DNA of 64,000 nucleotides, from positions 153,974 through 217,973 of IMG/VR virus record IMGVR_UViG_3300022745_000017; one strand, 5' to 3'. This document shows positions 369 to 62,596 of the stretch, piece by piece. Numbering within the stretch: position 1 is the stretch's first letter; each line of letters opens with the position of its first letter. The notes below the pieces were generated by a model. The model worked only from the letters and a program-made list of their open reading frames with translations, was not told the DNA's origin and did not search any database. A program made the position numbers and the translations under genes.

Positions 369-842
369 ATGAAAATCGTAACAGACCAATCCCTTATGTC
401 GGTTAGAAAAGGCATCATCATTCACGGAGTCAATGGACAAGGTAAGATGAATAAAGGCCTAGCCAAACAAATCAGACAAGCTTACCCTGTCGTTTACGAA
501 GACTACATGAACCGACAAGCTACACACGGCTTGTTGCTCGGTAGTATCATTGTCAGTGAGATTACTCCAGACCTAATTGTCATCAGCGGTGTATCCCAGA
601 AGTACTACGGTAATGACCCGAATGTGACTTATGCCAGTTTAGGTGCTATTAAGAAGATTTTCAGACTCGTGACCAACTACAATCTGAAGTACCAGCAAGG
701 GCGCTTAGAGATTCACTACCCGAGGATTGGTGGACAATTAGGCAATCTCCCATGGCCACAAACACAACGAGAAATAGAGGCTGAATTCAGCGATCAACTA
801 ACCTACGTCTTACACGACTACCGGCAAGACAGTGTGCCTTAG
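369..842 (+). CDS. Macro domain (ADP-ribose binding/hydrolase) protein
   Basis: IIIHGVNGQGKMNKGLAKQIRQAYP and IHYPRIGGQLGNLPW match the two macro-domain loops (HGxNxxGxMGxGxA; PxIGxGxxGxxW), with substitutions. Confidence 0.8.
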   Translation: MKIVTDQSLMSVRKGIIIHGVNGQGKMNKGLAKQIRQAYPVVYEDYMNRQATHGLLLGSIIVSEITPDLIVISGVSQKYYGNDPNVTYASLGAIKKIFRLVTNYNLKYQQGRLEIHYPRIGGQLGNLPWPQTQREIEAEFSDQLTYVLHDYRQDSVP

Positions 843-887
843 AATTCTATGTTGCCTACCCTTTAAATTTTTACATAGAAACTTATC

Positions 888-2975
888 ATGTCTACTTTTG
901 CTCGAAGGATGTTTGGTTTTGTAAATGTCCGAGAGGAAGACGGTGTTGTTTATGTGGAGGGCGTTAATGCCCGAATCATGCATGACAACATCGACAACCT
1001 CTGGCGGACATCGCGTGTATGTGCAAATGCTTTTTTGCATAAAGACCTCTCTAGTTTTTCTTTTCCTTCCTTTTATGCTCTGGACATTTGCTACTCGTTT
1101 GAGCGAATGCTCGCACAGCCAGAAGCTTTCTCAGGGGTTCGAACGATCTCCAAAATCGTAGAGGGTTTGCTGCAAAACACTTGGTTGAAAAAGACCAGGC
1201 AACCTCACCACGACCGACTTGATTACTCACGTCTAAAGCTACTCAATGTAACTCTGCGAGACTACCAAAGCGACTTGCTGGTAAACTACGCCAAGAACAC
1301 AGACCTCTATGACCTCAAAGGCTACTTGTTTGGCGCAGCTCCGGGTACTGGCAAGACGATTACCTCTATTGCACTCCACCTCTGCTTGAAAAACGATTTA
1401 GCGATCGTCACAGTCCCACAGGTAGCCATTGAAGACGTATGGGTGCAAACGCTCACTGGTATCTTTAAAAGGCCTGTGAAGGTATGGACTTCACACATGA
1501 CTGAGGAGCCCAAGGGCGATGAGGATGTCATTGTCATCCACTATGAGTTCCTCAAGAAGCTCTTGGAGATGATCTATAAGTTTCGTCATCGCAAAGTGAC
1601 GAACATCTTAGATGAGTCGCACAACTTCAATACGATTGGCACACTGCGCAGCGACCTCTACGTTGACCTCACCAGCCAGTCTAATTGCAAGGATGTGCTT
1701 TGGCTCTCAGGAACACCCATCAAGGCACTCCCGATCGAAGCAGCACCACTCATCCGCTGCATCGATCCAAAGTTCACTGACGACTGCTATAACCGGTTTA
1801 AACGCATTTATGCAGGCGCTACTAACCAAGCCCTAGAGATCTTGCAACACCGCCTTGGCATCATCTCGATGTATGTCAAAAAGGATGTCTTGAACTTAGC
1901 CCCTCCAATTTTCCAAGATGTCAAAGTCGTCTTGAAAAATGCGAGGGACTACACCTTGCCAGCTATCCGGCAGGCGATGATAGAGTTTACGCAAAAGCAA
2001 GAGATCTACTACGCCTCACGTCGCAAAGAAGACGAGGAGTTTTTCTACGGGATCTTGAACACTTACGCAGCCACTCTTAAATCAGCTGCGCAAAAGAGCG
2101 AGTACCAAGCTTATCGCAGGTCTTTAGATATCGTGATTCGCTCCAGTGGCTCTGCGATTGCCAGCGATGAGATCAGGGCTTGTAATGAGTTTGAAACACG
2201 CTGCATCATGCCTATCCTCAATTATGAGGAGCGCAAGATGTTCAAAGATGTTCGCTCTGTCATCAAGTACGTTAAGCTCAAGATCCAGGGCGAGTGCTTG
2301 GGCCGTGTAGTGGGGGGCTTGCGTATTCAGTGCGCTGTTGACATGGCTAAGGTATTTGACTTCCAGTCGATCTGCGAGACCACTACTAAGAAAACAGTGG
2401 TGTTCACAAGCTACGTTCAGGTGTTGTTGGAAGGACTGCAAAACGTCAAAAACAATACTGACTACACTCCACTGAGCGCTTACGCAGAAAACTCAGGCAA
2501 ACTCCACGAAACTGTCAAAGAGTTCTACGACAATGAGAATGCAAACCCACTATTTGCTACTTACAAGACTCTCTCGACTGCTGTGCCACTTACAGCGGCA
2601 GACGTAGCTGTGATTTTTGATGCACCATTCAGAGACTACACTTTGCAACAAGCCATCGCCCGGATTCACCGCGATGACTCTCGCCCTGGGCACAAAATCA
2701 CCCAGGTGTACGTCTACCTCGTGAGCCTTGACACAGGTGAAGAGATTAACATCTCGTCGCGCTCCTTTGACATCCTCAAATGGAGTCAAGAGCAAGTCCA
2801 AGCCATCACAGGTGTGCAGTCCCCCTTCGATATCACGACGCTCCAGAGTCAAAATGACCCAGCTATGGAGTCTCTTGGTTGGTATCACGACTTCCAAAAC
2901 CACTGGGAAACCAGTAAAGAAGTGGAGCCGTTTACAGTCACGATGGGACAAACACCTAAGGCTTTGATGTGGTGA
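888..2975 (+). CDS. SNF2/SF2-like helicase of phiKZ-like phages
   Basis: Walker A AAPGTGKT, motif II DESH, motif III SGTP, motif VI QAIARIHR. Confidence 0.9.
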   Translation: MSTFARRMFGFVNVREEDGVVYVEGVNARIMHDNIDNLWRTSRVCANAFLHKDLSSFSFPSFYALDICYSFERMLAQPEAFSGVRTISKIVEGLLQNTWLKKTRQPHHDRLDYSRLKLLNVTLRDYQSDLLVNYAKNTDLYDLKGYLFGAAPGTGKTITSIALHLCLKNDLAIVTVPQVAIEDVWVQTLTGIFKRPVKVWTSHMTEEPKGDEDVIVIHYEFLKKLLEMIYKFRHRKVTNILDESHNFNTIGTLRSDLYVDLTSQSNCKDVLWLSGTPIKALPIEAAPLIRCIDPKFTDDCYNRFKRIYAGATNQALEILQHRLGIISMYVKKDVLNLAPPIFQDVKVVLKNARDYTLPAIRQAMIEFTQKQEIYYASRRKEDEEFFYGILNTYAATLKSAAQKSEYQAYRRSLDIVIRSSGSAIASDEIRACNEFETRCIMPILNYEERKMFKDVRSVIKYVKLKIQGECLGRVVGGLRIQCAVDMAKVFDFQSICETTTKKTVVFTSYVQVLLEGLQNVKNNTDYTPLSAYAENSGKLHETVKEFYDNENANPLFATYKTLSTAVPLTAADVAVIFDAPFRDYTLQQAIARIHRDDSRPGHKITQVYVYLVSLDTGEEINISSRSFDILKWSQEQVQAITGVQSPFDITTLQSQNDPAMESLGWYHDFQNHWETSKEVEPFTVTMGQTPKALMW

Positions 2976-2981
2976 TTAAAC

Positions 2982-3004
2982 TAAAATAACTCGGTCACAT
3001 ATAC
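2982..3004 (+). promoter_or_regulatory. Putative phage early promoter motif
   Basis: TAAAA-N9-CACATATAC; the same motif recurs at 7416, 11234, 13624, 18552, 55652 and 60047. Confidence 0.55.
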
Positions 3005-3056
3005 TGTTAGTGTACCAGGAATGGTTTTTGGTACACTACTTTGAAGGACTGAGAAA

Positions 3057-3518
3057 GTGAAAATAATCATCAAGAGCAACGCTCTGCTTCACGAGAAGCT
3101 GAGCTCCCTGCGACTCAGGGGCGTCTACTCGACGCCCGCTGAGATTACTTTGACCGGTGAGCGCCACGAGCTGCATGCCAGTGGGGTCATGAAACAGCTC
3201 ACTCAGCTGATCTTGTCTTCTTACGTGCACGGCGCGGATGAGAAGGCGTCGTGGCCATTGAACCTAGCTGACAAAGCTGTGCTCAACAGCCACACCGTGA
3301 CCGTCGTCGTAGACGATGGTTTGGCAGCGACCGTACCTTGGTACATGAGCGAGGAAGATTACCTCTGGCAAAGCACCAGCTTCGCCCGACGTGTCCAGGT
3401 GATGGCTAATATGCAACGCACTGGCCGACACCCTGCGAATGAAGCTTACCACGATCTCACGACCCAAGTAGTCGTAGGTGTGATGGCATCAAAAGCCAAA
3501 CAAAGGCTTGCAGCATGA
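3057..3518 (+). CDS. Hypothetical protein
   Basis: 153-aa ORF with GTG start after a purine-rich leader; its stop overlaps the next start (ATGA). Confidence 0.7.
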   Translation: MKIIIKSNALLHEKLSSLRLRGVYSTPAEITLTGERHELHASGVMKQLTQLILSSYVHGADEKASWPLNLADKAVLNSHTVTVVVDDGLAATVPWYMSEEDYLWQSTSFARRVQVMANMQRTGRHPANEAYHDLTTQVVVGVMASKAKQRLAA

Positions 3519-3784
3519 CCAGAGCCCTGTCTATCACCATAGATAAAATAATCAAAGGTGAGGAGACAATTCACTTCCTCCCCAACCAGGACCCTGACTT
3601 TCATAAAGTTTACGACTCCTATAGATTCATCACTAACAAAGGTGTTGAGTTTGAAATGGAGATGTACTACGGTGAGATTTTATCTATAAGCGATGCTGAC
3701 AGAACCCTTGAAGCAAAGCTTATAGACCCACAAGACTTGAACGCACTACTAGAGTGTGTCATTGCTAGTCAGATCAGTCCATAA
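3515..3784 (+). CDS. Hypothetical protein
   Basis: 89-aa ORF translationally coupled to the previous gene and ending just before a palindrome. Confidence 0.7.
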   Translation: MTRALSITIDKIIKGEETIHFLPNQDPDFHKVYDSYRFITNKGVEFEMEMYYGEILSISDADRTLEAKLIDPQDLNALLECVIASQISP

Positions 3785-3786
3785 CA

Positions 3787-3822
3787 GCATACTCCCCCAG
3801 GCCTAGGCCTGGGGGAGTATGC
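3787..3822. terminator. Perfect 36-bp palindrome, probable bidirectional terminator
   Basis: GCATACTCCCCCAGGCCT|AGGCCTGGGGGAGTATGC between convergent genes; T-tract on the + side. Confidence 0.8.
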
Positions 3823-3839
3823 ACCACCTTTTTTCTTGC

Positions 3840-5912: not shown

Positions 5913-5936
5913 GATAACTCCTTTTTAGTAGTTAGA

Positions 5937-6878: not shown

Positions 6879-6950
6879 GATAAATACTCCATAAGCGAAG
6901 GGAAGAACACATAGCATAAACCTGTAAAAAATTACTCATATGCCAATTAT

Positions 6951-7029
6951 GTGTCACGCGGCAGGTACGGCCATTAGCAGAAAATCCTTCACATCAGCAA
7001 CAATGCGATGTACCCAAGTCGCGTGACAC
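6951..7029. other. Long-range inverted repeat / candidate structured RNA in a divergent intergenic region
   Basis: GTGTCACGCG (6951-6960) pairs with CGCGTGACAC (7020-7029); nested GGTAC (6964-6968) / GTACC (7010-7014). Confidence 0.45.
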
Positions 7030-7057
7030 CCTTTAACCACTTTGAGAGGAGAGAGCT

Positions 7058-11854: not shown

Positions 11855-13543
11855 ATGACCTCCAAAATCACTGAGCTGAACTTTTACCGCAATGACATCA
11901 CATTGACGGCTTCGATGAGCGACACCATGGCACTCTATGCGATCATGCATCATCGCCCGGACCTCAAAGAAAGTCTGCACGCCAAGATTGAAGCAGCCAT
12001 ACGTGAAGTCTTGCGTGAGCAAGACAACTCATGGGGCGTCCCGATGACCACGTACTTTCCCCCGAACATGGTGGCTGTGCTTCAGAAGCGATCATTGGCG
12101 AAAGGAACGCCGATCAACAATGAGCTCATCGACAGCTTGCGCCTGGGTATGAGCCTCTGTGAAGATATGATCCCTCATCAAAGCGCCGACAGTGAAGACC
12201 CGGTTTGCAACCTGATCTCCTTGCGAGAAATCCCAGCAACGCAACCCATGAGCACTCCCACGGCTGCACAACCTGTCGCCACACCAGCACCTCAGCCTGA
12301 AGTCAAAGCCACTGCCAAGCCACCTGAGCCAATGATCCTAGGTGATTTGGACTACGCCGAAGAAGTAGCCAAGAACGTGGGTAAGCAAGAACTCCGCGAT
12401 GTCAAAGAAGCCATCGATGAAGCCGGTGCCAAGCTGCGCTACATTCCGACAGAAGGCGGCGGCAGTTTGGTGTGGCGCAAGCCGGGTGAAGATATGTCCG
12501 AGGGCTACCCCGTCCAGATCGCCATGACGGCTTTCGACGATGACCTGCGACTCTACATCTCACGCAGCACCACGATGTTCGTGTCTGATGACATCACATC
12601 ACGCGCCGGCACGTCGGAAAGCGGTTTCAGCGATGGTTACACGGCGGCCTGCATCACCAACGTCGCTATGGAGGTAGTGATGGAGAAGATGCGGTCGTCC
12701 ATGGGGATCGACCGCATCACTGCTTTCTCCAATGGTCTGACGGCCCGAATGTCTGACAGCCGTACTTACGGAATCGTCATGCATCATGACGTGGCCTACA
12801 TCCCCGTCATCTTCAATGCCAATGAAGGTGACTTTGTGAAGACTCATGCAAATCACTGGCTCCCTCCGTCAGTAGTTATTGAGCTGTGCATGCAGTTCCC
12901 AACAATGCTGCCCCGAATTCTCGTGCAGGTCATGGACTCACACACCGGAGGCTTCAATGAGCAAACCATGTACAAGCAAAATCATGCACTGATGCGCTCG
13001 TCTTTACCCACTCAATCGGTGGTCGATGAGGTCGAACCCGAGGTCGAAGAGCATGAGCTTGTGGTGGTGAGCTCCGAGGGAAAACGCACCTTGTCATGGG
13101 TCATCAGTGGCACTGTCAATGGTACACCGGGTGTGACGGTGCGCCGTGTAAAGGTCAACCCTGTCTTGAGCAAAGATGTGGACGGCATAGACTACAGTTG
13201 CAGTACTGATGACTGGAAGGATTGGAAGATCACCACGAAAGATCCCAAAGTCATCGATGGCACGATCGACCCTCTACGCATCATGACGGAAAAGGTGGCG
13301 ATTCACTACGCCACGTACCTCGGCTTGATCAACCCCTCGAAACACGTCGAGAAGATCTACGAAGAGCTGAAGGCCATGAATGCCATAATCTCAAGCGGTG
13401 ATTCGTTGATTTACGTGGTGAGCCTCATCATCCGAAACCCGGAAACCCAGCTCGATTGGCAAGAGGGCAGCGATCTGGCAAAGGGTCGCAAGTGGGTCAA
13501 GCGCCCCACCCTGTCTTGGAGCGACCAAAGTACCGCTGACTGA
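11855..13543 (+). CDS. Hypothetical multi-domain protein with a Pro/Ala/Thr linker
   Basis: 562 aa, AAGGAAA SD; linker PATQPMSTPTAAQPVATPAPQPEVKATAKPPEP. Confidence 0.85.
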   Translation: MTSKITELNFYRNDITLTASMSDTMALYAIMHHRPDLKESLHAKIEAAIREVLREQDNSWGVPMTTYFPPNMVAVLQKRSLAKGTPINNELIDSLRLGMSLCEDMIPHQSADSEDPVCNLISLREIPATQPMSTPTAAQPVATPAPQPEVKATAKPPEPMILGDLDYAEEVAKNVGKQELRDVKEAIDEAGAKLRYIPTEGGGSLVWRKPGEDMSEGYPVQIAMTAFDDDLRLYISRSTTMFVSDDITSRAGTSESGFSDGYTAACITNVAMEVVMEKMRSSMGIDRITAFSNGLTARMSDSRTYGIVMHHDVAYIPVIFNANEGDFVKTHANHWLPPSVVIELCMQFPTMLPRILVQVMDSHTGGFNEQTMYKQNHALMRSSLPTQSVVDEVEPEVEEHELVVVSSEGKRTLSWVISGTVNGTPGVTVRRVKVNPVLSKDVDGIDYSCSTDDWKDWKITTKDPKVIDGTIDPLRIMTEKVAIHYATYLGLINPSKHVEKIYEELKAMNAIISSGDSLIYVVSLIIRNPETQLDWQEGSDLAKGRKWVKRPTLSWSDQSTAD

Positions 13544-13559
13544 TGGCGTGAAGTTTGTG

Positions 13560-13595
13560 TAAGCAGACTGTGGGCCTAGGCCCACAGTCTGCTTA
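13560..13595 (+). terminator. Perfect 36-bp palindrome terminator
   Basis: TAAGCAGACTGTGGGCCT|AGGCCCACAGTCTGCTTA followed by CCTTTCTTTTTG. Confidence 0.8.
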
Positions 13596-13623
13596 CCTTT
13601 CTTTTTGTCTATTTAGATACGGA

Positions 13624-13671: not shown

Positions 13672-14109
13672 ATGATGGAGATATGGTTTTGTAAAACAAA
13701 AGACCCGCACGGCTATATGCAGAACTTCTACCGCAGGCCCATGGTAGACCAGGTGACTGGCTTGCTAATGTGTGCCAGTGAAGCCGTTTATCAGTCCAGA
13801 AAGTTTAACACCTTCAGTATCAAACAAGCAATCGCGCAGGCTGACAATCCTTTCATGGCTAAGCAGATCGCTTATCGCTACCCTATTGAAGTCCCAAATT
13901 GGGATAACGATAGATGCTTGGTTGAGATGTTCAGCGTCGTGTACGATAAGTACAAACAACACCCAGACTTAGCGGAGCTACTCAAACAAACCTACCCAGC
14001 CAGGATATTTGAGCTCAGCTACAAAGACCTCTATTGGGGAACTCCCCCTAATAAGTACGGTAAAAATCACTTAGGTCTCATCACCGAGACTGTTCGAGAA
14101 ATGCTTTAA
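13672..14109 (+). CDS. NADAR (YbiA-like) family protein
   Basis: ATG 13672 with AAGGAG SD; YMQNFY...ASEAVYQSRKF...KYKQHPDLAELLKQT...IFELSYKDLYWG...GKNHLG matches the NADAR signature. Confidence 0.9.
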   Translation: MMEIWFCKTKDPHGYMQNFYRRPMVDQVTGLLMCASEAVYQSRKFNTFSIKQAIAQADNPFMAKQIAYRYPIEVPNWDNDRCLVEMFSVVYDKYKQHPDLAELLKQTYPARIFELSYKDLYWGTPPNKYGKNHLGLITETVREML

Positions 14110-16267: not shown

Positions 16268-16738
16268 ATGTCTATCGATCTACTCGATTACTACGATAAG
16301 ATGCGAAAGCCCGAAAACATTACTTGCACCGCTGTTTATGACGGTGAGAGGGTGTTGGAAGTCTTTCCTGTCTTTCGTAATCGCAAAAACCTGATCAATC
16401 TGTTCGAAAGCTATGGGGTTCGCCCCGTAGATAGTCCAATGGTGTTTAAGGCTTATGTAGCTGCAACGAAAGAAGCTAGGACTGCTCAACAACTGCCGAC
16501 TGATGCGTGTATGTACATGCAGGCCCACATCAGCATCGTTAAGGTGCTTGGCAGGGGTAATGGCAGTCTTTACGCCAAGGCCGCTGTACAGCCCGATCAG
16601 GCATGCTGCTTAAACCTGTGGCAATCTGGCTGCTGGCAACAGCTCGCCAGAGATTTTACGATGGGCAACCACGACTGCCTGAAAGTCATTGTCAAGCATA
16701 TGCGCATGACTTATCTGAGGGATACCGCAAATGGATGA
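16268..16738 (+). CDS. Hypothetical protein
   Basis: 156-aa ORF in the operon, overlapping the next start. Confidence 0.7.
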   Translation: MSIDLLDYYDKMRKPENITCTAVYDGERVLEVFPVFRNRKNLINLFESYGVRPVDSPMVFKAYVAATKEARTAQQLPTDACMYMQAHISIVKVLGRGNGSLYAKAAVQPDQACCLNLWQSGCWQQLARDFTMGNHDCLKVIVKHMRMTYLRDTANG

Positions 16739-17693
16739 AAACCTTAACCAAGTTTTACAGTGGGCCATGGTCTACATCAATGGCAAAATACCCTACGCCA
16801 TTCCTGGGTGTGAGCTATCCGACGACCTCGATCAAGCAAAAGTCGAGTTCGTTTTGATGCCAGCCTCGTCGTCCCAAGCACAACCACTGCTGTGCTACTA
16901 CGACAAAGCTCAGCAAAAAGGCGTCGTCGAGTTTTTAGGTAAGACTTATTACTTGACTACAGATAAACTGCTCCAACAGTATGACACCCGGTCGCACGAC
17001 GCACTGGACAAATACGTCAGCTACTGGAAGGAGTGCCATAAGGAGCACATCCCTAGCAAGTCACACCACTTGCCAAAGAAGGTATCCCGCATTGTTCGCT
17101 CAATGATGCGAGATCATCAAATCGACATCCCTGAAATATATGCGGTAGATGACTTCCACATGACTTGCTTCACGACAGGTGAGCAGCGTGGCTACATCAG
17201 TATCTGCAAACTCGAAAACACGCTGGTGGTTAGAAAGCTGATTTCCAATCCAACTAAAGTCGAAGTTAAGCAGTTTGATCTGACAGGCATTGGCGATGAT
17301 CAGAAAAAGATCTCTGATTTAGCTACTACTGTGTTTGAAAGTCTGTGCTTCGAGGTGTTACAAGACATCCGCAAGCGCAAGCTGGTAGATGAGTTTAACA
17401 ATTCTCCAGAGCAAGCTGTCTCCAGATTAAAGGGCTTTCAAGCAAAACGTGTCGGTGTAGACTTGCATCCCGCCTACTATGACCAACCAACAACCGATGA
17501 AGACGACAGCAATGGTTACATCGGATTCTGGGAGTTGGAGAACGGTAAAGTCTACAAAGGTTTTTTGTACGGAGACATCGAAACCATCATCGAGTCCAAC
17601 GCCTCTAAGATCGATGTCACCTACATCGTCGTTAAAGAACAATCCACATTCCAGGTAGATAGACTCTACTCATCTAACACCCTCATCCATTAA
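16731..17693 (+). CDS. Hypothetical protein
   Basis: 320-aa ORF in the operon. Confidence 0.8.
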   Translation: MDENLNQVLQWAMVYINGKIPYAIPGCELSDDLDQAKVEFVLMPASSSQAQPLLCYYDKAQQKGVVEFLGKTYYLTTDKLLQQYDTRSHDALDKYVSYWKECHKEHIPSKSHHLPKKVSRIVRSMMRDHQIDIPEIYAVDDFHMTCFTTGEQRGYISICKLENTLVVRKLISNPTKVEVKQFDLTGIGDDQKKISDLATTVFESLCFEVLQDIRKRKLVDEFNNSPEQAVSRLKGFQAKRVGVDLHPAYYDQPTTDEDDSNGYIGFWELENGKVYKGFLYGDIETIIESNASKIDVTYIVVKEQSTFQVDRLYSSNTLIH

Positions 17694-21853: not shown

Positions 21854-22621
21854 TCACCAATTCAAGGGAACGGGTGGCTTGCCAAGACTCAATAAAGAAG
21901 CTGTGAGACTCTTAAACTCATTGTACTCAGCCTCAGAGACTTCGGTGAATTCATAGATCTCCTTGTCCTTGGCATTACACCCAACCATGCTTGACACCCC
22001 GAGGTTATCAAACTTAGCCTTGATGCGGTAAAAGCCTTTGGGCTTAGCTTCACCTTCGTCGAGAAACGGCAAGCCCTCAGCGTAGTCGTGCTCCAGGTAA
22101 AACTCAGCAACCATCAGAGGATCACTCTTAGCGCGAGGAGCAATCTCTAAGGACGTACAAAACAGCTTACCGATGGCTGTAGACTTGTACGTCGCAGTCG
22201 CTTTGTTGTAAGCCACGAGCCACACTTCACCCGTAGCTTCAGACTCCCAGAGCAACTTCTTGTTGATGGTAATAGCGTAGTTGAACGGGATGGTCTGTAC
22301 GATGTAGCCGCCGTGGTAGCCAGTGACCTTGGTCGTACTTTTTCCCATGCTATTATAGATATCGTCTTTCCAGCGATTGTATCCAATTACACACCCCATC
22401 AGACTGCGTCCCATGCAGATGCGTGGCGTCGAAGCGTTTTCAATTACCTCATCTTTGGCGGCGGTGTAAGGCAGTCGCGGGATGTAGACCTTTTGCACTT
22501 CCTTGTCAATGCGAAACAAGTGCTTGATGCCAAGGTCTTCAGGTGTAACGATCTTGGCATTCTTTCTCACTAGAGGTGATTGCAATTGCATCCAGTGGTC
22601 GATCTCTTCTAACTCAGTCAT
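21854..22621 (-). CDS. Conserved phiKZ-like protein, often called virion structural; possible ADP-ribosyltransferase-like fold
   Basis: LFRID...YIPR...ENASTPRICMGRSLMGCVIGY...ATGEVWLV pattern. Confidence 0.6.
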   Translation of the reverse strand: MTELEEIDHWMQLQSPLVRKNAKIVTPEDLGIKHLFRIDKEVQKVYIPRLPYTAAKDEVIENASTPRICMGRSLMGCVIGYNRWKDDIYNSMGKSTTKVTGYHGGYIVQTIPFNYAITINKKLLWESEATGEVWLVAYNKATATYKSTAIGKLFCTSLEIAPRAKSDPLMVAEFYLEHDYAEGLPFLDEGEAKPKGFYRIKAKFDNLGVSSMVGCNAKDKEIYEFTEVSEAEYNEFKSLTASLLSLGKPPVPLNW

Positions 22622-22932
22622 TTCTTATCTCCTTTAGCCAAAGCCTTTTCTTTCCAATGCTTGCTTAGATTCACACAGGCCTTCTCACAGGTATCGAACT
22701 TCTTGCAACACGCGCTACAAGGCTCTAACAGCTCTACAGGCTGTATCCCTAGTGTCTTGGCAATCGTCACCATCTCCGGCAGTGTTACAGGCGCTAAGCG
22801 CCCTTTCTCGATCTCCACCAACCGAGTAACTGTCATGCGCGACTTAGCTCGAAAATCAAGTACCGACATGCGAGCAGCTTTTCGCACTTTGTTGACGTTC
22901 TCACCAAAGCCTTTTGCAGATAGAGAATCCAT
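22618..22932 (-). CDS. XRE-type helix-turn-helix regulator with a Cys-rich tail
   Basis: GENVNKVRKAARMS...RLVEIEKG...IAKTLGIQPVELL HTH pattern, then CSACCKKFDTCEKAC. Confidence 0.75.
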   Translation of the reverse strand: MDSLSAKGFGENVNKVRKAARMSVLDFRAKSRMTVTRLVEIEKGRLAPVTLPEMVTIAKTLGIQPVELLEPCSACCKKFDTCEKACVNLSKHWKEKALAKGDKK

Positions 22933-22938: not shown

Positions 22939-23220
22939 TTACTCCTTGATCAGTGAGTAACCACTATCGATGTTGGCCGCAGGACTAAAGGACTCGTAGT
23001 TGTCCTCATAGATCACGTAATACCCACCTGCAACAGGTTTGTGTTTTTCCAGGTAAGCTGAGGTCACCGTGATGATCACGGGCTCCTTATCGGGATCGAC
23101 ATTTTCCAGCGTCATGTAGTTAGACAGTGGCCCCATCTCAATAAAGAGAATCTTGGCAGCTTTGACCTTCTTGTGACACTGGTAGGTAGGCAACTCGGAG
23201 TTGGTAAAAGTGTTCTTCAT
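22939..23220 (-). CDS. Conserved small phage protein (GGYYVxYxDxYxSxSP family)
   Basis: YQCHKKVKAAKI...KHKPVAGGYYVIYEDNYESFSPA. Confidence 0.8.
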   Translation of the reverse strand: MKNTFTNSELPTYQCHKKVKAAKILFIEMGPLSNYMTLENVDPDKEPVIITVTSAYLEKHKPVAGGYYVIYEDNYESFSPAANIDSGYSLIKE

Positions 23221-55672: not shown

Positions 55673-55681
55673 CCTCTTGGA

Positions 55682-55751: not shown

Positions 55752-55946
55752 ATGAAACAACTACCCTGTGACATGGCTGATCAGATGTTAGAGATCGTGG
55801 TAGCGGCAATCGCCTGTAGCCGAAAGTCGGTTTACGAACAACGCACTGTCCACAATGCTTCAACCAATGACACGCTCCTCACCGATGAACAGGCAGAAGC
55901 GTGGTTGCAAGCTGAATGGGCTCGACAGCAAGCACCGAAAGACTGA
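55752..55946 (+). CDS. Small hypothetical protein
   Basis: ATG 55752 with AAGGAG SD (MKQLPCDMADQ...). Confidence 0.65.
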   Translation: MKQLPCDMADQMLEIVVAAIACSRKSVYEQRTVHNASTNDTLLTDEQAEAWLQAEWARQQAPKD

Positions 55947-56018
55947 TGTCATTTTGTGTCACAGGTACTCACTGGGCTAGTCCCAATAGTGAGTACCTAT
56001 TTTTCTTTTGGGGTCATC

Positions 56019-56300
56019 ATGTCTTTATTTTTTAACTTCCCTGGCGCAGGCTACTACGCCTTCAAAACCCAGAACATGACAGCCGAGGAATCCTGGGCAA
56101 TCGTTCCGATTGATTATTGGATGAATAACAGGCATTTGAAAGATGGTCATGCTAACGTCGAAATCAATGGCATGGAAGAAGTGATGGATCATGTGTATCA
56201 AAAGACGCAAATCGCTAAAAGCTTAGATGCAGCAGCCCTGCTCACCCAGGCAGGATTTACCATCATTGACAATCCCTTCATTACACACAAGGCAGAATGA
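56019..56300 (+). CDS. Small hypothetical protein (virion-protein-like)
   Basis: ATG 56019 (MSLFFNFPGAGYY...); ATGA overlap with the RNAP gene. Confidence 0.65.
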   Translation: MSLFFNFPGAGYYAFKTQNMTAEESWAIVPIDYWMNNRHLKDGHANVEINGMEEVMDHVYQKTQIAKSLDAAALLTQAGFTIIDNPFITHKAE

Positions 56301-56998
56301 CCATGGTCACCGGTGATAGAAAAGCAGCAGAAAAAGAACTCATCTACGTCATCAACAAAATCTGTAACGACGGAGGCAAAAATGCCGAAATCTATAACCA
56401 GATGTTTGCTAATCTGGATGACGAGGAGTTTGAAGAGTACATGAAGTCGATCGACGGGGATAATCGGTACTTGGTAGTTTACGAGCCCAATATGAGTGGG
56501 GCTCCGATTGACCCGGTGCGCAACGTCGAGACTGCACGGGAGTGGGGGTATGAGTTTTACCAAAACATCCATGTCCCGGCTATCGGTGGTATGCCAGCTT
56601 ACGTGACACCTATCAAGTACCTCGTGGGGGACTCACCTCTGCGCCGTCAAGCACAGCTACTGGCCAAGAAGATCTCTGTGCCAACGCATAACCGAAGTGT
56701 CGATGACATGACGGGACAGCCTACAGGTGATTCTAAGGGCAGTAAGGTCAGCAATACGGAAGCAGGTATCTTGGGAGCTCGTGAGGACGATGACGCGCTC
56801 CTAGAGCTGTTTAAGTACCGTGGTGGAGATACTAAGGGCTTTAGAGCGATGAATATGCAAGCTGAGCGCTCGGGTCGGGTAAGTTTAAAGAGTATCGCCC
56901 CATTTGCTGGTGGTGTTAAGTCAACACACACTGTGTATGTCTATTTGTCTGGCATGCACTTGCAAAACACTCTCAAACAATCGGCAACAGATGCGTAA
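56297..56998 (+). CDS. Virion RNA polymerase beta subunit, C-terminal fragment (phiKZ gp149-like)
   Basis: PLRRQAQLLAKKISVP...RSVDDMTGQPTGDSKGSKVSNTE aligns with beta-subunit RSTGPY...TQQP...GQRFGEME; ELFKYRGGD. Confidence 0.88.
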   Translation: MTMVTGDRKAAEKELIYVINKICNDGGKNAEIYNQMFANLDDEEFEEYMKSIDGDNRYLVVYEPNMSGAPIDPVRNVETAREWGYEFYQNIHVPAIGGMPAYVTPIKYLVGDSPLRRQAQLLAKKISVPTHNRSVDDMTGQPTGDSKGSKVSNTEAGILGAREDDDALLELFKYRGGDTKGFRAMNMQAERSGRVSLKSIAPFAGGVKSTHTVYVYLSGMHLQNTLKQSATDA

Positions 56999-57530
56999 TC
57001 TCAGGAAACCCCCAGAGGCCACCGCGACCAGCCTCAACCCAAAAGACTATCCAGATCACCGCATTTGCGTAGCTGGGTCCCGCTCATGGAAGCCTACTCT
57101 TGAAAACAAGCTCCGCTTTCACGATGAGATTTGTGACCTACTAGAAGACATCAAGTCTTACGATCCGCAAGGTGGGGTCTTGTTCGTCAGTGGTGCAGCG
57201 CCTGATGGAGCTGATCGCATGATCATTGAGTGGTGTCATCGCTGGGGGTATCCTTGCATCGAGATGCCAGCGATGTGGAATGATTACCGCGAGTTCGCTG
57301 AGCGCACCGGTAAGAAAAACCCCGCAGGTATGCTCAGAAACCGACAGATGCGAGATGTCATCACGTACTTGTTGGCGTTCTATGACGGAGTGTCAAGGGG
57401 TACAAAAGACATGATTGACATCTGTAGCGAGTCAGGACAAACGATCCAAGTCAAAACAATCGCTGTGCAACCCACGCCCAGTGACGCAGTGATCTGTCCG
57501 GGACGTGTACGCATTATAGAGAAAGCTTAA
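56991..57530 (+). CDS. SLOG-superfamily (YspA/DUF2493-like) protein
   Basis: RICVAGSR, VSGAAPDGAD, AGMLRNRQM, LAFYDGVSRGTKDMI; ATG 56991. Confidence 0.88.
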   Translation: MRNLRKPPEATATSLNPKDYPDHRICVAGSRSWKPTLENKLRFHDEICDLLEDIKSYDPQGGVLFVSGAAPDGADRMIIEWCHRWGYPCIEMPAMWNDYREFAERTGKKNPAGMLRNRQMRDVITYLLAFYDGVSRGTKDMIDICSESGQTIQVKTIAVQPTPSDAVICPGRVRIIEKA

Positions 57531-57531
57531 C

Positions 57532-58281
57532 ATGGCAAGAGAGACCAAAAAGATCATTGTCGATATTGAGGCACTGTTTGATATGCGCTTAGGGGTGTTG
57601 ATTACGCTCCTGGGAGCTGAGGCAGCGTTTGAAGCGACCAAAGACGCCAGCTACTACACCCGCACTTATCAAGATATCACGACTCCAGCAGGCCCCTTGA
57701 CAAAGGAGATTTACCGCAAAGTCCTTAACAAAGACCCAGCGGCAATCTGGCAGGTCTCAATGCGCACAAAGATATACGAGTTCATCGTGAGTCGCTGTGC
57801 GAAGGTGCGAGAAGGCTCTTTTCGATCGCCTATTCATGCTGATCCAGAAATCTGTATCAATATCCACGGGTATTCGCTCACTGAGAAAGAGGAGAGTAGC
57901 CTCATCGCAGGTATGCGTGATTTGACGGGAGCTCTCTACGATGTCAGTACCTTGGACATGGGAGATTCTGAGCTCTCCCCGGCGTGGCTAAAGGCACATG
58001 CTAGAGCTTTGATCATGTACGATCCGGTGAACTGGGTCAATACAAATTCTTCAGCTCTGATCAAGAGTGCTCCAAACATCGATTTCACAGTGTTTGCTCC
58101 CAGACTTTTGGAAAACAATGACCACCTCGAAGAGGTTAAGAAAGCCAAAGCGACCTACAGTGGCGATGTGTTTAACTTGTTCGAGCTGACATGCAGCCAG
58201 TGCTTCCAACTCAGTCTATTGCCTGTGAGTGCTTTTTGTGCAGACACTCCGGCTAACACAGATAGCTTTTTGGAGGCATAA
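57532..58281 (+). CDS. Conserved phiKZ-like protein with a degenerate HAD-like N-terminus
   Basis: IIVDIEALFDMRLG; ICINIHGYSLT; LIMYDPVNW. Confidence 0.7.
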   Translation: MARETKKIIVDIEALFDMRLGVLITLLGAEAAFEATKDASYYTRTYQDITTPAGPLTKEIYRKVLNKDPAAIWQVSMRTKIYEFIVSRCAKVREGSFRSPIHADPEICINIHGYSLTEKEESSLIAGMRDLTGALYDVSTLDMGDSELSPAWLKAHARALIMYDPVNWVNTNSSALIKSAPNIDFTVFAPRLLENNDHLEEVKKAKATYSGDVFNLFELTCSQCFQLSLLPVSAFCADTPANTDSFLEA

Positions 58282-58282
58282 G

Positions 58283-58316
58283 CCCTACTACCGGTGGTTT
58301 GCCACCGGTAGTAGGG
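58283..58316. terminator. Bidirectional hairpin
   Basis: CCCTACTACCGGTGG-TTTG-CCACCGGTAGTAGGG. Confidence 0.8.
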
Positions 58317-58354
58317 ATGTGTGCCAATTTAAATCGAAGCCGCACCACTGCTAC

Positions 58355-59611
58355 TCAGATGTGCTGGAGAGCGTAGTAAAATTCGACAGACTTCATGGCT
58401 TGCGACAACAGTGCCACCGAGGTGTGTCCAGCGATAGCGTCTTCATCCATAGCGTGAATGAAAAACTGATAAAGACCGATGACTTGGCGCACATACCCTA
58501 AGGTGTCAGCGCTCCAGCCAGCGGGGTCTTTTGCATTCTCGATCTTTGTGATCAAGCCTTGCAGTGTCGTGGTAATGGGCTTGCGCTCTTCGACCACCTT
58601 TTCAGCCCAGCTCTTAAAGCTTTTGGCAAACTCTGCGAACTTGACTAACTCGTCGATGGTCATCAGCCTGACTTCAATATCAGCCAGGCCGTTATTAGCA
58701 GCAGCCAAATCTTTAACCATGTCCGCATAGTCTTGTCCGTGTGGCCCTTTGCGAACAACGAGCTTGCTCGAAGAGACCTCGAAAATAAGGCAGTGCAAAC
58801 CAGTAGGAGGGCTGTAGACATAAACAGTCGAGGTGCCTTTTTTCTCCGGCTTGAAGTCCTTTGCCAGATCGACGATGTGGCTAGCGAGCGTGCCATTCTC
58901 ATCAGTGTCGTTTTTGATCGAGCCTAACGCTTGCCAATACTCTTGGTCGCGGCGACTAAAGTCGAGCGAATTGATTGTTGGTGAGAGCTTTTTGATGGTC
59001 TCGGTGATTTGCCCACTCACGCGCTGGCTGACTTCGATGCTGCGCTTAGCCTCTTCCCATGGCGTGAGGTTTTTGTGCAACTTACCCCACAGATAGCCAG
59101 CGTCATGCTTGCTGATCTCGACTTGCCGGGACTGGGAAATCTTGTACATCTGAATGGCGTGCGCATCATCGGACTCTGGCTTATGCCGGGTTGACAAAGA
59201 CGCCATCTTGTCGATAATGGCCTTCTTGTTTTTATCCACCACAGCGAGCTTTTTCTCAAAGAAAGCCAAGTGATCGAGCATCTTGTTGCCGCCAGGGCCA
59301 ACACCGATCGGCAAACCCAGTACCCGACTTGCTAACCACACACCAATTCGCTTGACCAAGTTGACAATCGATTTCCACAGTGAAGCAATGTAGCTGCCAA
59401 CACCCTCTCTTGCCACATAGATCCGGTCTTCTTGGCTCAACCCAATGGACTCCAAGCACGGATTGTAAAGACGATGTGACGCAGTGTACATTACTTTCGG
59501 AATGTGCTGTGTTTTGCCTTGAGCAAAGTCCAAGCACTCGCGCAAGCTCTCTACCTGAAGCGTCAAGCAAGCAGCAAATTCTTCGTGATCAAAACTAGCT
59601 TGCATGATCAT
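58355..59611 (-). CDS. Inner-head protein (phiKZ paralogue family)
   Basis: VARE|G followed by amphipathic IASLWKSIVNLVKRIGVWLA, similar to 42783-44276. Confidence 0.7.
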   Translation of the reverse strand: MIMQASFDHEEFAACLTLQVESLRECLDFAQGKTQHIPKVMYTASHRLYNPCLESIGLSQEDRIYVAREGVGSYIASLWKSIVNLVKRIGVWLASRVLGLPIGVGPGGNKMLDHLAFFEKKLAVVDKNKKAIIDKMASLSTRHKPESDDAHAIQMYKISQSRQVEISKHDAGYLWGKLHKNLTPWEEAKRSIEVSQRVSGQITETIKKLSPTINSLDFSRRDQEYWQALGSIKNDTDENGTLASHIVDLAKDFKPEKKGTSTVYVYSPPTGLHCLIFEVSSSKLVVRKGPHGQDYADMVKDLAAANNGLADIEVRLMTIDELVKFAEFAKSFKSWAEKVVEERKPITTTLQGLITKIENAKDPAGWSADTLGYVRQVIGLYQFFIHAMDEDAIAGHTSVALLSQAMKSVEFYYALQHI

Positions 59612-60009
59612 TTCCCAGTGAATGTTTTGTAATCGAGCATAGAGCCATTGGTGTCGAGCTCACCAGGCACGATCTCTGGCAGTGGCAAGTCATCGGGCAA
59701 CTTAGGCACGTAGTCCCCAGGGTTGTCTGTCGGCTTGATACCCCGGATGTTTGGATCGTTGAGCATTTGCGCAATGAGCACAGCGGCGTTAGCAGCCTTA
59801 TTGCCATTGTCGGCATCGACCTTGATCTTCTTGCGCGTCAGGTGCTGGCGGTCAGAGTCATTGATCAAGCTAGCTGCTACCTTGATACTGTCGAGATCAT
59901 CAGGCGCTTTACCGCCTTTCATGATCGCCCCTAACAACAGTGCGCGCGTTTGCTCATTTGTCCTTAGCGCGACCTCATGTTCATCACTGGGTTTGTTTTC
60001 TTCAGACAT
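59608..60009 (-). CDS. Conserved phiKZ-like hypothetical protein
   Basis: LINDSDRQHLTRKKIKVD; PEIVPGE. Confidence 0.75.
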   Translation of the reverse strand: MSEENKPSDEHEVALRTNEQTRALLLGAIMKGGKAPDDLDSIKVAASLINDSDRQHLTRKKIKVDADNGNKAANAAVLIAQMLNDPNIRGIKPTDNPGDYVPKLPDDLPLPEIVPGELDTNGSMLDYKTFTGK

Positions 60010-60046
60010 ATGGTTTTCCTTTAAAAAGTCTCATATTTTTTACGCT

Positions 60047-60056
60047 CACATATCAT
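60047..60056 (+). promoter_or_regulatory. Putative promoter core
   Basis: CACATATCAT in an AT-rich divergent gap. Confidence 0.4.
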
Positions 60057-60102
60057 CAATATAGTACATGCGGACATCCGCGCTTATTTAGGAAAAGATG
60101 CA

Positions 60103-60606
60103 ATGCTTTACTGGAAAAATCTCCTATGGTTTAAGCTCAAATGGATGGTGTTATCAGACACTACCAAGCAGTGCTTACTCAAAGATAAGCGCCATGAAAC
60201 CTTGGTTAAAAGTCTTTTTGATCCTGCTTTGATCTTAAAGACCCCACTGTCTGCAATGGAGACCGAGACCTTTCAAACCAAAGAGTTTGAGACGTTAGCA
60301 GCGCTGAATTATTGTTTATCAGCGACACTGGATGTTGTGGCATCCTGGCGACACCATAAAGATAACATGACCCTGACGGTGCCTATGGAGATCAATAGCA
60401 TCTCTCTGGAACAAAACCTCAAAGACTTCACGACTGTGACAGCGCTAGCTAGCTTCATCCCGCTTTATCTGCGCTGCCACAGCGTCTATCTGGAGTTGCA
60501 TCAGCACAGCGACTCCAGGGTCAGGTTATTTACTATCAGGCTTGGCAATGTTTTAGCCTTTTGCTACCAACTGATGGAGGCTTACCATGTAGCGATTACC
60601 AAATAA
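60103..60606 (+). CDS. Hypothetical protein
   Basis: 167-aa ORF with AGGAAA SD. Confidence 0.65.
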   Translation: MLYWKNLLWFKLKWMVLSDTTKQCLLKDKRHETLVKSLFDPALILKTPLSAMETETFQTKEFETLAALNYCLSATLDVVASWRHHKDNMTLTVPMEINSISLEQNLKDFTTVTALASFIPLYLRCHSVYLELHQHSDSRVRLFTIRLGNVLAFCYQLMEAYHVAITK

Positions 60607-60647
60607 ACGAGCACTATAGTCTATTTAAGTCAGCAAGAGAGTTTAAG

Positions 60648-61118
60648 ATGAACAAAAAGAAAGACTTTGTCCACTTACTCAGCAGTCCTAGCAAAGGGGT
60701 TGGTGAGTGCCGTGGCGTCAGAGGTTTTCTAGCCAACACCTGGCGGCAGCTGTTATTCCAGGCCAATGTAACGCCGACGAAGTTTACTTCGCTGCTGAGC
60801 GTGTGGCTTAGAAAAGACTCGGCTAAGCGTAAAAACGCTGGTGTGGTCGGTGATAGCTCGGCGCGCAATAACCGCCTTAGAGCGATGGTGGCGAACTCGA
60901 TGACGTGGAAGGTGTTATGCTCCAGTGCAAGCATCCTCGGTGTCGTCAAGATCAAATGTACTTTTGAGTGGGTGTGGGCCAATGGTCGCTCTCACATCAC
61001 TTACGGGGAGCTCGATCTCTCCGACGTGGATAATAGTCCCGATGATCCGGATGATGATTTCGTAAAGGTAGTCAGTGATGAATCACCACCCTGGGTTGAC
61101 GACCCAAAAAATGAATGA
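60648..61118 (+). CDS. Hypothetical protein
   Basis: ATG 60648; basic core and acidic tail. Confidence 0.7.
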   Translation: MNKKKDFVHLLSSPSKGVGECRGVRGFLANTWRQLLFQANVTPTKFTSLLSVWLRKDSAKRKNAGVVGDSSARNNRLRAMVANSMTWKVLCSSASILGVVKIKCTFEWVWANGRSHITYGELDLSDVDNSPDDPDDDFVKVVSDESPPWVDDPKNE

Positions 61119-61623
61119 GGTTTGTCACCTCTTCAACACGCTTTTACAGATGTCTTACAGACAGATCCCTAGCACAGATCTAGCCCACAAGACACGCGTG
61201 TTTTTCAGCAGATACAGTGCCTCTCCGGTCTCAGTTTGGTTTACCAGACAAGCCATTGAGGACATCTTCCGGGAAATCTTAGCAGAAGAGAAGATCCATG
61301 AATTCCTCATGACGTTGACCACCCATTTCTTTGCCAGGCTGGGGGATGACGACACCATCTACAATTTGGCAAAGACACTGGCCACTGCTGCTTGTATCGA
61401 CGGGCCGTACCCCGAGCAGTCGTACTTGCCCCAATCTCTGAAAAAATACCTGCCTTCGACATTGTTTGGAGAGTACAACCTCCAAGGACTACCCACGCGA
61501 AAGCATTGGTATTCTTGGAAAAAGACTGACTCCATTCAAGAGTTGAAAGACCTTCTAGTGAGCAACAAGCCACTGATGGTTCTGATGATGATCAACATTA
61601 CTGGAGCTCAAAATGAGCAATGA
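61111..61623 (+). CDS. Hypothetical protein
   Basis: ATG 61111 in frame with track ORF 61075; overlaps both neighbours. Confidence 0.7.
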   Translation: MNEVCHLFNTLLQMSYRQIPSTDLAHKTRVFFSRYSASPVSVWFTRQAIEDIFREILAEEKIHEFLMTLTTHFFARLGDDDTIYNLAKTLATAACIDGPYPEQSYLPQSLKKYLPSTLFGEYNLQGLPTRKHWYSWKKTDSIQELKDLLVSNKPLMVLMMINITGAQNEQ

Positions 61624-62596
61624 CAACGATTTCATTCCCGTCTCTCAAATCTTGCTGGTGACTGAAGATCAGTCTGGTGATTCCCAAGCCGAGCCGGGCG
61701 AGGCTGTGGAATTGACTCTGGCCCAAGGTCAGCCTGAAGATGGCCTGCGTCTGCCGAGCGTTGAAGAGCAGCGCGAAGTCGTCCAAGCAGCATTGGCTGA
61801 AAATCCGCAAACCCCCACCGATTGGCCAAAGCTCCCGACAGCAAAGCCAGCCCCTTTGCCCAGCTACAAGATCCCACCTCCAGTTCAACAGCGTTTCAGT
61901 GGCGACATCCGTGAAAAGGCCCGCCGGCTGGCACAGGGCTGGGGCGCTCGCACACCGAGCCCCACGATCGGCAACACCATCGGCGGCAGTGATTTGATGT
62001 CCGCTTGCGCAGACATCATCAACGAGACGGTTCGCCCTGTTTACAACGACGGTGAGACCGAGATCAACGTCAGCGAAGACGCTATCACCGAGCTGGGCAA
62101 GCAGCTCTCCATGGGCTACTCCTACGCTTTCGAGTTCGACAACCTCGGGCGGTTTGCCTGCGTGGGTGGGCTCTACAGTTGGCTGTCCTATGGTCAAGCT
62201 GACTACTACCGCACTGCCGTTGGCCAAGATTGCTCCCGCTCGCGCTACGGCTCTTCCAACACTGGTCGCCCCGACCCCCGCTGGCGCATCTTGGTGGCAG
62301 CCGCTACCTACAGCAAGATCGTGACACTGCCTGGTTTGGCCGAGCGGCTGGCCAACTCATGGCTGCCCTTCCGCCACTACGTGCAAAGCGAAACCAGCCA
62401 ACTCGATGTGCGCACCGTGTCAGCCGAAATCTGGTACGTGCCGATGCTCTACGAGTGCCAGCGGGTTGTGCGACACAACCTGGCCAATCCGGAAAACCAA
62501 ATCGAGCCCGATTTTGGTTTTCTGGCAGCAATCACCTGGCACAACTATCGGCACCGGTTGGATAGCCGGTTTGTTGCGCACGGTGGCAAAGCTTAA
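61613..62596 (+). CDS. NADAR-like protein, apparently degenerate, with an acidic/Pro-rich N-terminal extension
   Basis: DGETEINVSEDAITELGKQLSMGYSYAFEFDNLGRFACVGGLYSWL resembles the phage motif DGxxHINxxSxxxTxLGxxLSNF...GxFxSxEGxWxW. Confidence 0.55.
   Translation: MSNDNDFIPVSQILLVTEDQSGDSQAEPGEAVELTLAQGQPEDGLRLPSVEEQREVVQAALAENPQTPTDWPKLPTAKPAPLPSYKIPPPVQQRFSGDIREKARRLAQGWGARTPSPTIGNTIGGSDLMSACADIINETVRPVYNDGETEINVSEDAITELGKQLSMGYSYAFEFDNLGRFACVGGLYSWLSYGQADYYRTAVGQDCSRSRYGSSNTGRPDPRWRILVAAATYSKIVTLPGLAERLANSWLPFRHYVQSETSQLDVRTVSAEIWYVPMLYECQRVVRHNLANPENQIEPDFGFLAAITWHNYRHRLDSRFVAHGGKA

Follow-up and report, generated by a model that had tools for sequence, protein, structure and literature searches.

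The window analysed here is a 64-kb stretch (bases 153,974–217,973) that forms the final part of the 217,973-bp IMG/VR virus record IMGVR_UViG_3300022745_000017, a record that bears 127-bp direct terminal repeats. Six genes dispersed along the window were grouped in an initial annotation around ADP-ribose and nicotinamide adenine dinucleotide (NAD): a macro-domain gene, a NADAR gene directly upstream of an NAD-dependent DNA ligase gene (ligA), a SLOG gene, a degenerate NADAR-like gene, and a gene for a protein resembling ADP-ribosyltransferases (ARTs). All six are open reading frames where that annotation had placed them (Table 1), and the sequence and structure searches bear out the macro, NADAR, SLOG and NADAR-fold assignments.

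The genome as a whole is phiKZ-like, with homologues (tblastn) of phiKZ PicA (gp69), the major capsid protein, gp68, gp70 and five RNA-polymerase subunits. Immediately upstream of the gp55 homologue is a 646-aa gene that matches Pfam Chimallin_Phikzvirus at 43.5 bits (cut-off 27; Pfam cut-offs throughout are gathering scores, and the further libraries searched were PHROG, NCBIfam, PDB sequences and IMG/VR). Judged by these genes, the phage is a nucleus-forming chimallivirus encoding chimallin and PicA, and the premise of a DNA-shielding shell stands because of the chimallin match. No near-identical phage DNA was present in the reference phage collection. Outside the window there are two Nudix-family matches (genome positions 75062–75397, 57 bits, and 136432–136803, 45 bits), the second of which contains an in-frame TAG, while a genome scan matched no NadV or NAPRTase-type enzyme.

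Table 1. Features of the window discussed in the text (window coordinates)
Feature	Position	Strand	Evidence
Macro-domain protein, 157 aa, DarG/TARG1/Poa1p class, AdfM-like	369–842	+	phrog_335, PDB, NCBIfam, RAY gp152
Intrinsic terminator hairpin, 17 pairs then T-run, closes the upstream unit	13559–13596	+	sequence
Intact YbiA-subfamily NADAR, 145 aa	13672–14109	+	Pfam NADAR, YbiA 2b3w
NAD-dependent DNA ligase LigA, 711 aa	14121–16256	+	Pfam domains, NCBIfam
Uncharacterised jumbo-phage protein, 255 aa: ART-like core (residues ~20–182) and C-terminal beta-beta-beta-beta-alpha region (~150–244)	21854–22621	-	AF2, VIA
Xre-type helix-turn-helix protein, 104 aa, Cys-rich tail	22618–22932	-	Pfam HTH_26, 27.2 bits vs 22
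Small virion-RNA-polymerase beta-subunit piece, RAY gp154 homologue	56297–56998	+	phrog_3233, 1.5e-68; 38% to RAY gp154
SLOG protein, 179 aa, YAcAr/YspA-related	56991–57530	+	Pfam YAcAr, phrog_289, RAY/SA002 fusions
Acidic, Pro/Gln-rich, probably disordered N-terminal region of a 327-aa protein	61613–61984	+	sequence; low-confidence Atlas model
NADAR-fold domain of the same protein, phage His-type family, catalytic and ligand-binding positions substituted	61985–62596	+	AF2, VIA, Foldseek, alignment

The macro, SLOG and NADAR-like genes

The macro, SLOG and degenerate NADAR-like genes lie apart as three genes, at about 0.4, 57 and 62 kb in the window; in related phages the same domains are fused or adjacent. 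Erwinia phage RAY has a macro gene (gp152), followed by a NADAR-like/SLOG fusion (gp153) and then the virion RNA polymerase beta2 gene (gp154), and in SA002 a macro/NADAR-like fusion (gp142) is followed by a NADAR-like/SLOG fusion (gp143). When 80 IMG/VR loci were scanned with small hidden Markov models (HMMs) for the three domains, built from few seeds so that all counts are lower bounds, a triple fusion of macro, NADAR-like and SLOG domains (425–431 aa) was found at five, a macro gene beside a NADAR-like/SLOG fusion at four, other NADAR-like/SLOG fusions at six, and a neighbouring SLOG gene at three; the remaining loci carry NADAR-like genes alone or in tandem. Tandem pairs of NADAR-like genes were seen at L072, L075, L076, L079, L084, L086, L092 and L094, and at L055 and L056 a 392-aa and a 202-aa NADAR-like copy lie side by side.

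Iyer et al. (2022) described large phages in which Macro, NADAR and SLOG domains occur together or fused, and proposed that these domains act on soluble ADP-ribose derivatives (PMC9503650). The window has the same three domain types, in genes related by homology to RAY gp152/gp153 as well as to the triple fusions of IMG/VR, but here they are separate genes and the NADAR-like part is degenerate. Since related phages fuse these domains or place their genes side by side, the grouping is not a matter of chance, and the three window genes are, by sequence comparison, a taken-apart version of one module. Fusions of this kind would suit proteins that process or bind derivatives of ADP-ribose.

The macro-domain assignment rests on the agreement of three sources. 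The protein matches phrog_335 at 3.5e-22; its sole NCBIfam match is the macro part of antitoxin_DarG (3e-7); and its solved relatives are yeast Poa1p (2e-7), Thermus DarG (1.7e-5) and Mycobacterium DarG (7e-3), with no others. Identity is 28% to RAY gp152 and reaches 41% for macro proteins from E. coli jumbo phages of the 121Q-like group. The best-studied protein for comparison is AdfM (phiKZ gp104), which removes DarT2 marks from DNA, resides in the phage nucleus, is required on DarTG2 hosts and protects the phage from DarT2 despite the shell; mutation of its Asn23 lowers activity (PMC13309987). Asn22 of the window protein (in G-V-N-G-Q-G) aligns to this residue and to DarG, and the Gly-rich diphosphate loop, I-G-G-Q-L-G-N-L-P-W, aligns with the loops of DarG and AdfM; the window protein thus keeps the Asn of V-N-x-x-G as well as the Gly-rich loop with its following (L/V)-x-W. 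Both AdfM and the window protein are stand-alone DarG-like macro proteins of about 150–160 aa in chimalliviruses, and the window protein is a homologue of RAY gp152, whose gene is part of the conserved macro/NADAR-like/SLOG neighbourhood. Differences are also evident: identity to gp104 is 23% and limited to the first 61 residues, the window protein is nearer to the 121Q-like macro proteins, and it has VSQK in place of FPTK, which moves the Lys by one position (the spacing from this Lys to the next Pro matches DarG and AdfM if shifted by one). By sequence, the protein is placed in the AdfM clade, at an identity of just 23–28%.

The neighbour of the macro gene in this genome is a SNF2-type helicase gene rather than the SLOG module. 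The helicase, a 695-aa SNF2/ResIII-type protein (Pfam ResIII 1.4e-11, SNF2-rel 8.4e-10), follows 45 nt after the macro gene, and the two genes together span window 369–2975 on the plus strand. Eukaryotic ALC1 combines a SNF2 helicase with a macro domain, and the pairing of the two genes recalls this protein.

The SLOG protein scores around the Pfam YAcAr cut-off of 28.2 bits (25.5 as the long frame, 26.8 alone, 28.4 together with neighbouring segments) and matches phrog_289 at 2.8e-20. It resembles the C-terminal SLOG halves of RAY gp153 (2e-11) and SA002 gp143 (2.5e-15), and these matches together uphold the assignment; a single-sequence search of PDB gave rows at chance level only. Its gene comes directly after the RAY gp154 homologue, the same gene that in RAY comes after the macro and NADAR-like/SLOG genes.

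The 327-aa protein encoded at 61613–62596 matches no Pfam family at all, including NADAR, Phage_30_3 and NADAR-DarT1, and its only family matches are phrog_652 and phrog_11222. No relatives were returned by the word-index search, whether with the whole protein or its C-terminal half, or by an IMG/VR scan with its own domain, and a single-sequence search of PDB gave chance-level rows. A profile of the NADAR-like family ranks PnNADAR first in PDB, at an E-value of only 0.49, and tblastn against phages finds domains of about 30% identity in 121Q-like phages, Vi1-like phages and many chimalliviruses. The fold of its C-terminal part is clear from modelling. Residues 125–327, modelled by AF2 from an alignment with 58 IMG/VR relatives (predicted local distance difference test score, pLDDT, 81.5), gave Z-scores of 10.7 to 8bau, 10.5 to 2b3w and 9.3 to 8bat over 136–163 aligned residues in VIA, a structure search independent of Foldseek that covered 48,161 chains; the next Z-score was 5.0. 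Foldseek ranked the same three NADARs on top (probabilities 1.00, 0.98 and 0.54; all others at most 0.05).

Within this preserved fold, seven positions conserved in the family are substituted relative to the 58 relatives: His to Glu150, Asn to Met167, Glu to Gly185, Ala to Cys207, Lys/Arg to Ser208, Gly to Arg211 and Arg to Gln283. The term degenerate is therefore well chosen. Gly185 occupies the position of Glu36 in T4 AdfN and Glu43 in PnNADAR, which is Glu in 58 of the 58 relatives, a count inflated by fetch patterns that held this Glu and one His and so partly built in the result; among relatives recovered by tblastn without any pattern, six of seven have Glu. The Asn and Lys/Arg columns lay outside the fetch patterns, and Cys207-Ser208 replace the Ala-Lys/Arg (A-K motif) of the relatives. 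The family His that takes the place of Glu125 in phages is retained (His255), and T4 AdfN aligns, which places the domain in the His-type phage NADAR group. With AdfN (gp30.3) the C-terminal domain thus shares the NADAR fold and the family His; it differs in having no Phage_30_3 match, in Gly185 for Glu36, in the loss of the His, Asn and Lys/Arg positions, and in some 125 additional N-terminal residues. This N-terminal region matches no family and is without a counterpart extension in the relatives examined. Because the catalytic Glu has been lost, the protein is probably a non-catalytic binder or adaptor rather than a hydrolase, and the intact open frame and confident fold argue that it is not a dying gene. 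A role as a DarT1 eraser is unlikely.

The intact NADAR gene upstream of ligA

The gene at 13672–14109 scores 61.1 bits against Pfam NADAR (cut-off 35.1; 62 bits in the genome scan), and its best match among PDB sequences is E. coli YbiA (2b3w, 1e-12), followed by PnNADAR (8bau, 3e-3). It also scores 58.9 bits against TIGR02464, a riboflavin-intermediate N-glycosidase family. Its motifs S-E-A-V-Y-Q-S-R-K and E-L-S-Y-K-D-L-Y-W align with the corresponding motifs of 8bau and 2b3w, with the Glu and Lys of the pair seven residues apart, and equivalents are present of PnNADAR Glu43, Lys50, Glu125, Asp130 and Trp133, residues for which catalytic roles are described (PMC11543638). The Glu125 position is Glu in the YbiA subfamily, usually His in phage NADARs and Asp in DarT1-linked ones (PMC11543638). 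The likeness to YbiA thus extends from the best sequence match to the subfamily Glu and to the Glu/Lys pair, Asp and Trp common to both; the differences are that the window gene is phage-encoded and probably co-transcribed with ligA. Just one phage NADAR near the YbiA group was reported by Johannesman et al. (PMC11257639).

A longer frame starting from a TTG at 13555 was considered and rejected. This TTG lies inside a G+C-rich 17-pair terminator hairpin, and the ATG at 13672, which has a Shine-Dalgarno sequence (aaggaga) in front of it, is taken as the start. The hairpin divides the NADAR-ligA pair from a 562-aa gene that ends at 13543, and ligA begins 11 nt beyond the NADAR stop codon. The two genes probably form one transcript, with NADAR as the first gene after a strong terminator. 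Start, family, catalytic residues and the short gap all accord with an intact NADAR directly upstream of ligA, as the initial annotation had it, and the ligase itself is a complete LigA with Ia, adenylation, OB, Zn, HhH and BRCT domains in Pfam (the Zn finger weakly, 15.7 bits) and an NCBIfam equivalog score of 573.9 bits (cut-off 369).

Downstream of ligA, a 320-aa protein (window 16731–17693, plus strand) has a sub-threshold match to the PoNe immunity C-terminal domain (E 0.0015).

The ART-like protein and its neighbours

The protein encoded at 21854–22621 matches nothing in Pfam, NCBIfam or PDB, the last searched both with the single sequence and with a family profile. It does belong to a PHROG family (5e-24), which is unnamed. 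The word-index protein search gave two relatives, and an exhaustive search yielded 402 representative clusters at E ≤ 1e-3, almost all of them viral. Fused domains in longer family members were uninformative. phiKZ gp283 (L012:3586–4050, 154 aa) matches the family HMM at 2.4e-11 over the N-terminal half and first core motifs only, indicating that a short stand-alone form exists. A relationship to ChmC (phiKZ gp67) as a paralogue was considered and rejected, as no similarity was found.

The AF2 model, built from a 100-sequence alignment, is confident (pLDDT 91.3, predicted template modelling score 0.88). Foldseek returned nothing at E ≤ 1e-3, and the Atlas and BFVD structure libraries returned only unnamed phage proteins. 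In VIA, ART-fold proteins account for at least 24 of the first 50 rows, aligned from residues 20 or 33 to residues 153 or 182 of the model, among them HopF, Scabin, Tpt1, NatT, pertussis S1, pierisin, TreX, CARDS, Arr, ParT, diphtheria toxin, MTX, RES toxins, PltA, HopU1, TreTu, LT, DarT1 and SAIP. On a second look, ARTs filled each of the top 25 rows. Their Z-scores are 3.4–5.3, a level which by the tool's own notes may reflect merely a common arrangement. On the model, membership of the ART-like fold is likely, and the tentative label of ART-like candidate given by the initial annotation suits these neighbours, which are almost all ARTs; the low Z-scores and the absence of a sequence-family match speak for keeping it tentative.

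The only consistent neighbours of residues 20–182 are ARTs of the R-S-E clade (Scabin, pierisin-1, pertussis toxin, cholera toxin A) and of toxin-antitoxin systems (NatT, ParT, RES). Candidate counterparts of the R-S-E residues are a His or Arg on the first core strand and an invariant Glu. The first, at position 37, is His in 80% of family members and Arg in 19%, the window protein among the latter. Glu61, Glu132 and Trp134 are invariant in the family and Arg67 nearly so. Judged by the ranges over which cholera toxin, pertussis toxin and Scabin align, the strand-1 Arg of these toxins would fall at model residues 36–37, and Glu132, which precedes a strand, is a candidate for the catalytic Glu. 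In the model, His/Arg37 and Glu132 are compatible with an active site. The window protein differs from the R-S-E ARTs in its Z-scores of only 4–5.3, in having no sequence-profile link and no assignable S-T-S or Y motif, in the confinement of its family to large phages, and in an added C-terminal PUR-like sheet. The best matches of this last region (residues 150–244) are PUR repeats, at Z 3.3–3.8 over 45–51 residues, a weak lead to nucleic-acid binding.

An Xre-type helix-turn-helix (HTH) gene shares its last 4 nt, at the stop, with the start of the ART-like gene, and the HTH gene itself comes after a small MazG-like gene and a DnaB-like helicase gene. The MazG-like product (93 aa; window 22939–23220, minus strand), between the helicase and HTH genes, matches phrog_11049 at 6e-21 and a MazG-like pyrophosphatase PHROG weakly (7e-5). 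Towards its C-terminus the HTH protein carries a cluster of Cys residues (C-x2-C-C ... C-x3-C), present also in its L021 homologue, that may bind metal or sense redox. In layout only, the upstream overlapping HTH gene resembles Xre-RES, ParST and NatRT. The nearest relative, L021, has the same pair with the same overlap, at identities of 66% (ART-like) and 56% (HTH), but the pairing is absent from L022, L116–L122, RAY, PCH45 and FLC9. In L022 and L121 the ART-like gene comes after DnaB and the HTH gene is missing. In RAY and PCH45 it lies between homologues of genes g012 and g013 of this genome, which here are adjacent without it. Homologues of RAY gp167, gp168 and gp170 adjoin in the present genome (17050–20046) without gp169; the gp169 homologue is the ART-like gene, 156 kb away by the DnaB operon, which indicates that the gene has moved. 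With locations that differ and a pairing absent in more distant relatives, the gene appears to be mobile in position and its association with Xre recent. A prediction of a complex between the ART-like and HTH proteins scored 0.00, with controls not run, and weighs neither way. Nothing links the ART-like protein to the erasers.

Interpretation of the gene set

The reading towards which we lean, with modest confidence, is that the window encodes several proteins whose function is to remove or bind ADP-ribose, among them the macro, NADAR-like and SLOG proteins as the separated parts of one module. The macro protein, similar to AdfM and DarG, would cut ADP-ribose off thymidine in phage DNA that host DarT2 reaches despite the shell. 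The SLOG and degenerate NADAR-like proteins would act on, or merely bind, ADP-ribose-derived small molecules or released ADP-ribose, and the intact YbiA-type NADAR would most likely remove ADP-ribose from guanine, or a related N-glycosidic adduct, in DNA repair. The ligase would be an ordinary NAD-consuming LigA, a member of the kit only through its cofactor and its adjacency to NADAR, and the ART-like protein a separate, widely conserved jumbo-phage protein that may be an NAD-using enzyme. The observations behind this reading concern the identities and folds of the domains, the patterns of residues, the fusions and the order of the genes; substrates, roles against DarT, binding by the degenerate NADAR and any activity of the ART-like protein are inferred.

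The proposal of the initial annotation that the phage covers both DarTG classes can be followed halfway. Cover against DarT2 by the macro protein is plausible on the precedent of AdfM. Cover against DarT1 is doubtful, the intact NADAR being of the YbiA type and the second one lacking the Glu. All tested NADAR subtypes, E. coli YbiA included, cleave ADP-ribosylated guanine in vitro (PMC11125620), and T4 AdfN (gp30.3) protects the phage against DarTG1 (PMC11257639); in one study, however, neither YbiA nor T4 gp30.3 rescued cells from DarT1 toxicity (PMC11125620). An anti-DarT1 action of the intact NADAR is thus possible, but it is not the safe reading. Besides the failure of rescue, several points weigh against the set as a whole. 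The macro protein remains below the Pfam Macro cut-off (18.3 bits against 22) and is equally near to DarG and to Poa1p, the ADP-ribose-1''-phosphate phosphatase of yeast; the column of the F-P-T-K Lys (Lys80 of Thermus DarG) is Gln77 in both HMMER and MAFFT alignments, with Lys78 adjacent. The NADAR-ligA adjacency is not found at the ligases of phages Goslar and Yaphecito, the IMG/VR scan gave no close relatives of the intact NADAR, the conservation counts behind the degenerate NADAR are inflated as described, and the phage is known here from its genome alone.

A rival reading is a set directed mainly at small-molecule immune signals rather than at ADP-ribosylated DNA, in which the SLOG, macro and NADAR proteins would bind or degrade cyclic ADP-ribose isomers, ADP-ribose-1''-phosphate and similar molecules produced by host TIR, RES or sirtuin proteins in Thoeris-like defences. 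For combinations of Macro, NADAR and SLOG in phages, such a function has been predicted in print (PMC9503650). Poa1p is the macro protein's best PDB match, the triple-domain fusion fits stepwise handling of a single molecule, and a catalytically dead NADAR could be a sponge. We nevertheless hold it to be unlikely, though worth serious consideration, as a macro protein of the same clade, from another chimallivirus, acts on DNA and is located in the phage nucleus (PMC13309987), ADP-ribosylated guanine in DNA is a substrate for every NADAR subtype tested (PMC11125620), and binding by phage YAcAr SLOG proteins is a prediction. Quite improbable is a collection of unrelated housekeeping genes, in which the macro protein clears ADP-ribose-1''-phosphate from RNA repair, NADAR is a metabolite-damage N-glycosidase, LigA serves replication, SLOG processes nucleotides, and the gene at 61613–62596 is decaying. 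The TIGR02464 match of the intact NADAR, distances between the genes of as much as 60 kb, and the lack of close relatives of the degenerate gene in the word-index and IMG/VR searches would fit such a collection, but a riboflavin pathway context is not evident, the triple fusions and conserved neighbourhoods functionally tie the macro, NADAR-like and SLOG domains together, and the degenerate gene keeps its open frame, its confident fold and many structural residues of the family.

The position of the ART-like protein can be considered separately. That it is an active ART or other NAD consumer, whether within a writer/eraser pair, a toxin/antitoxin-like pair or as an Xre-controlled ART, is doubtful. 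Its structural neighbours are almost exclusively ARTs, His/Arg37 falls where the cholera toxin, pertussis toxin and Scabin ranges place the first-strand Arg, with Glu132 before a strand, and the overlapping upstream Xre gene, kept in the nearest relative, is arranged as in Xre-RES, ParST and NatRT. Set against this are Z-scores of at most 5.3, which the tool itself rates as a possibly common arrangement, the lack of any Pfam, NCBIfam or PDB profile match, catalytic residues located by ranges and not residue by residue, and the absence of the HTH pairing in distant relatives, where the gene either follows DnaB or has virion-block genes around it. That the phage brings its own DarT or RES was considered and rejected, neither family having a match in the genome scan. 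The writer/eraser circuit raised by the initial annotation is speculation without direct support, since there is no such match and the ART-like protein is unproven as an enzyme.

Within the set of ADP-ribose-removing or -binding proteins favoured here, the eraser kit as a concept has already been published, both for the domain combinations (Iyer et al. 2022, PMC9503650) and for AdfM (PMC13309987) and AdfN (PMC11257639). The points that are new are the split module, an apparently dead NADAR with a long disordered head, a YbiA-type NADAR on the ligase transcript, and the unnamed but widespread ART-like family. The natural split provides small separate genes with which the role of each domain can be tested. 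A NADAR fold that has lost its catalytic Glu and kept its shape is a candidate ADP-ribose binder or sponge and a probable pseudo-enzyme. A YbiA-type NADAR, rare among phages, that is probably transcribed along with an NAD-dependent ligase hints that nick sealing and the de-ADP-ribosylation of bases may be connected. Large and conserved but without a name, the ART-like family bears on whether chimalliviruses carry an NAD-using writer of their own. It is improbable, on present evidence, that this family is an unrecognised ART clade of nucleus-forming jumbo phages, with a PUR/Whirly-like sheet that aims it at single-stranded nucleic acid; if it were, such phages would themselves mark nucleic acids with ADP-ribose, and their macro and NADAR erasers would in part control the phages' own writer.

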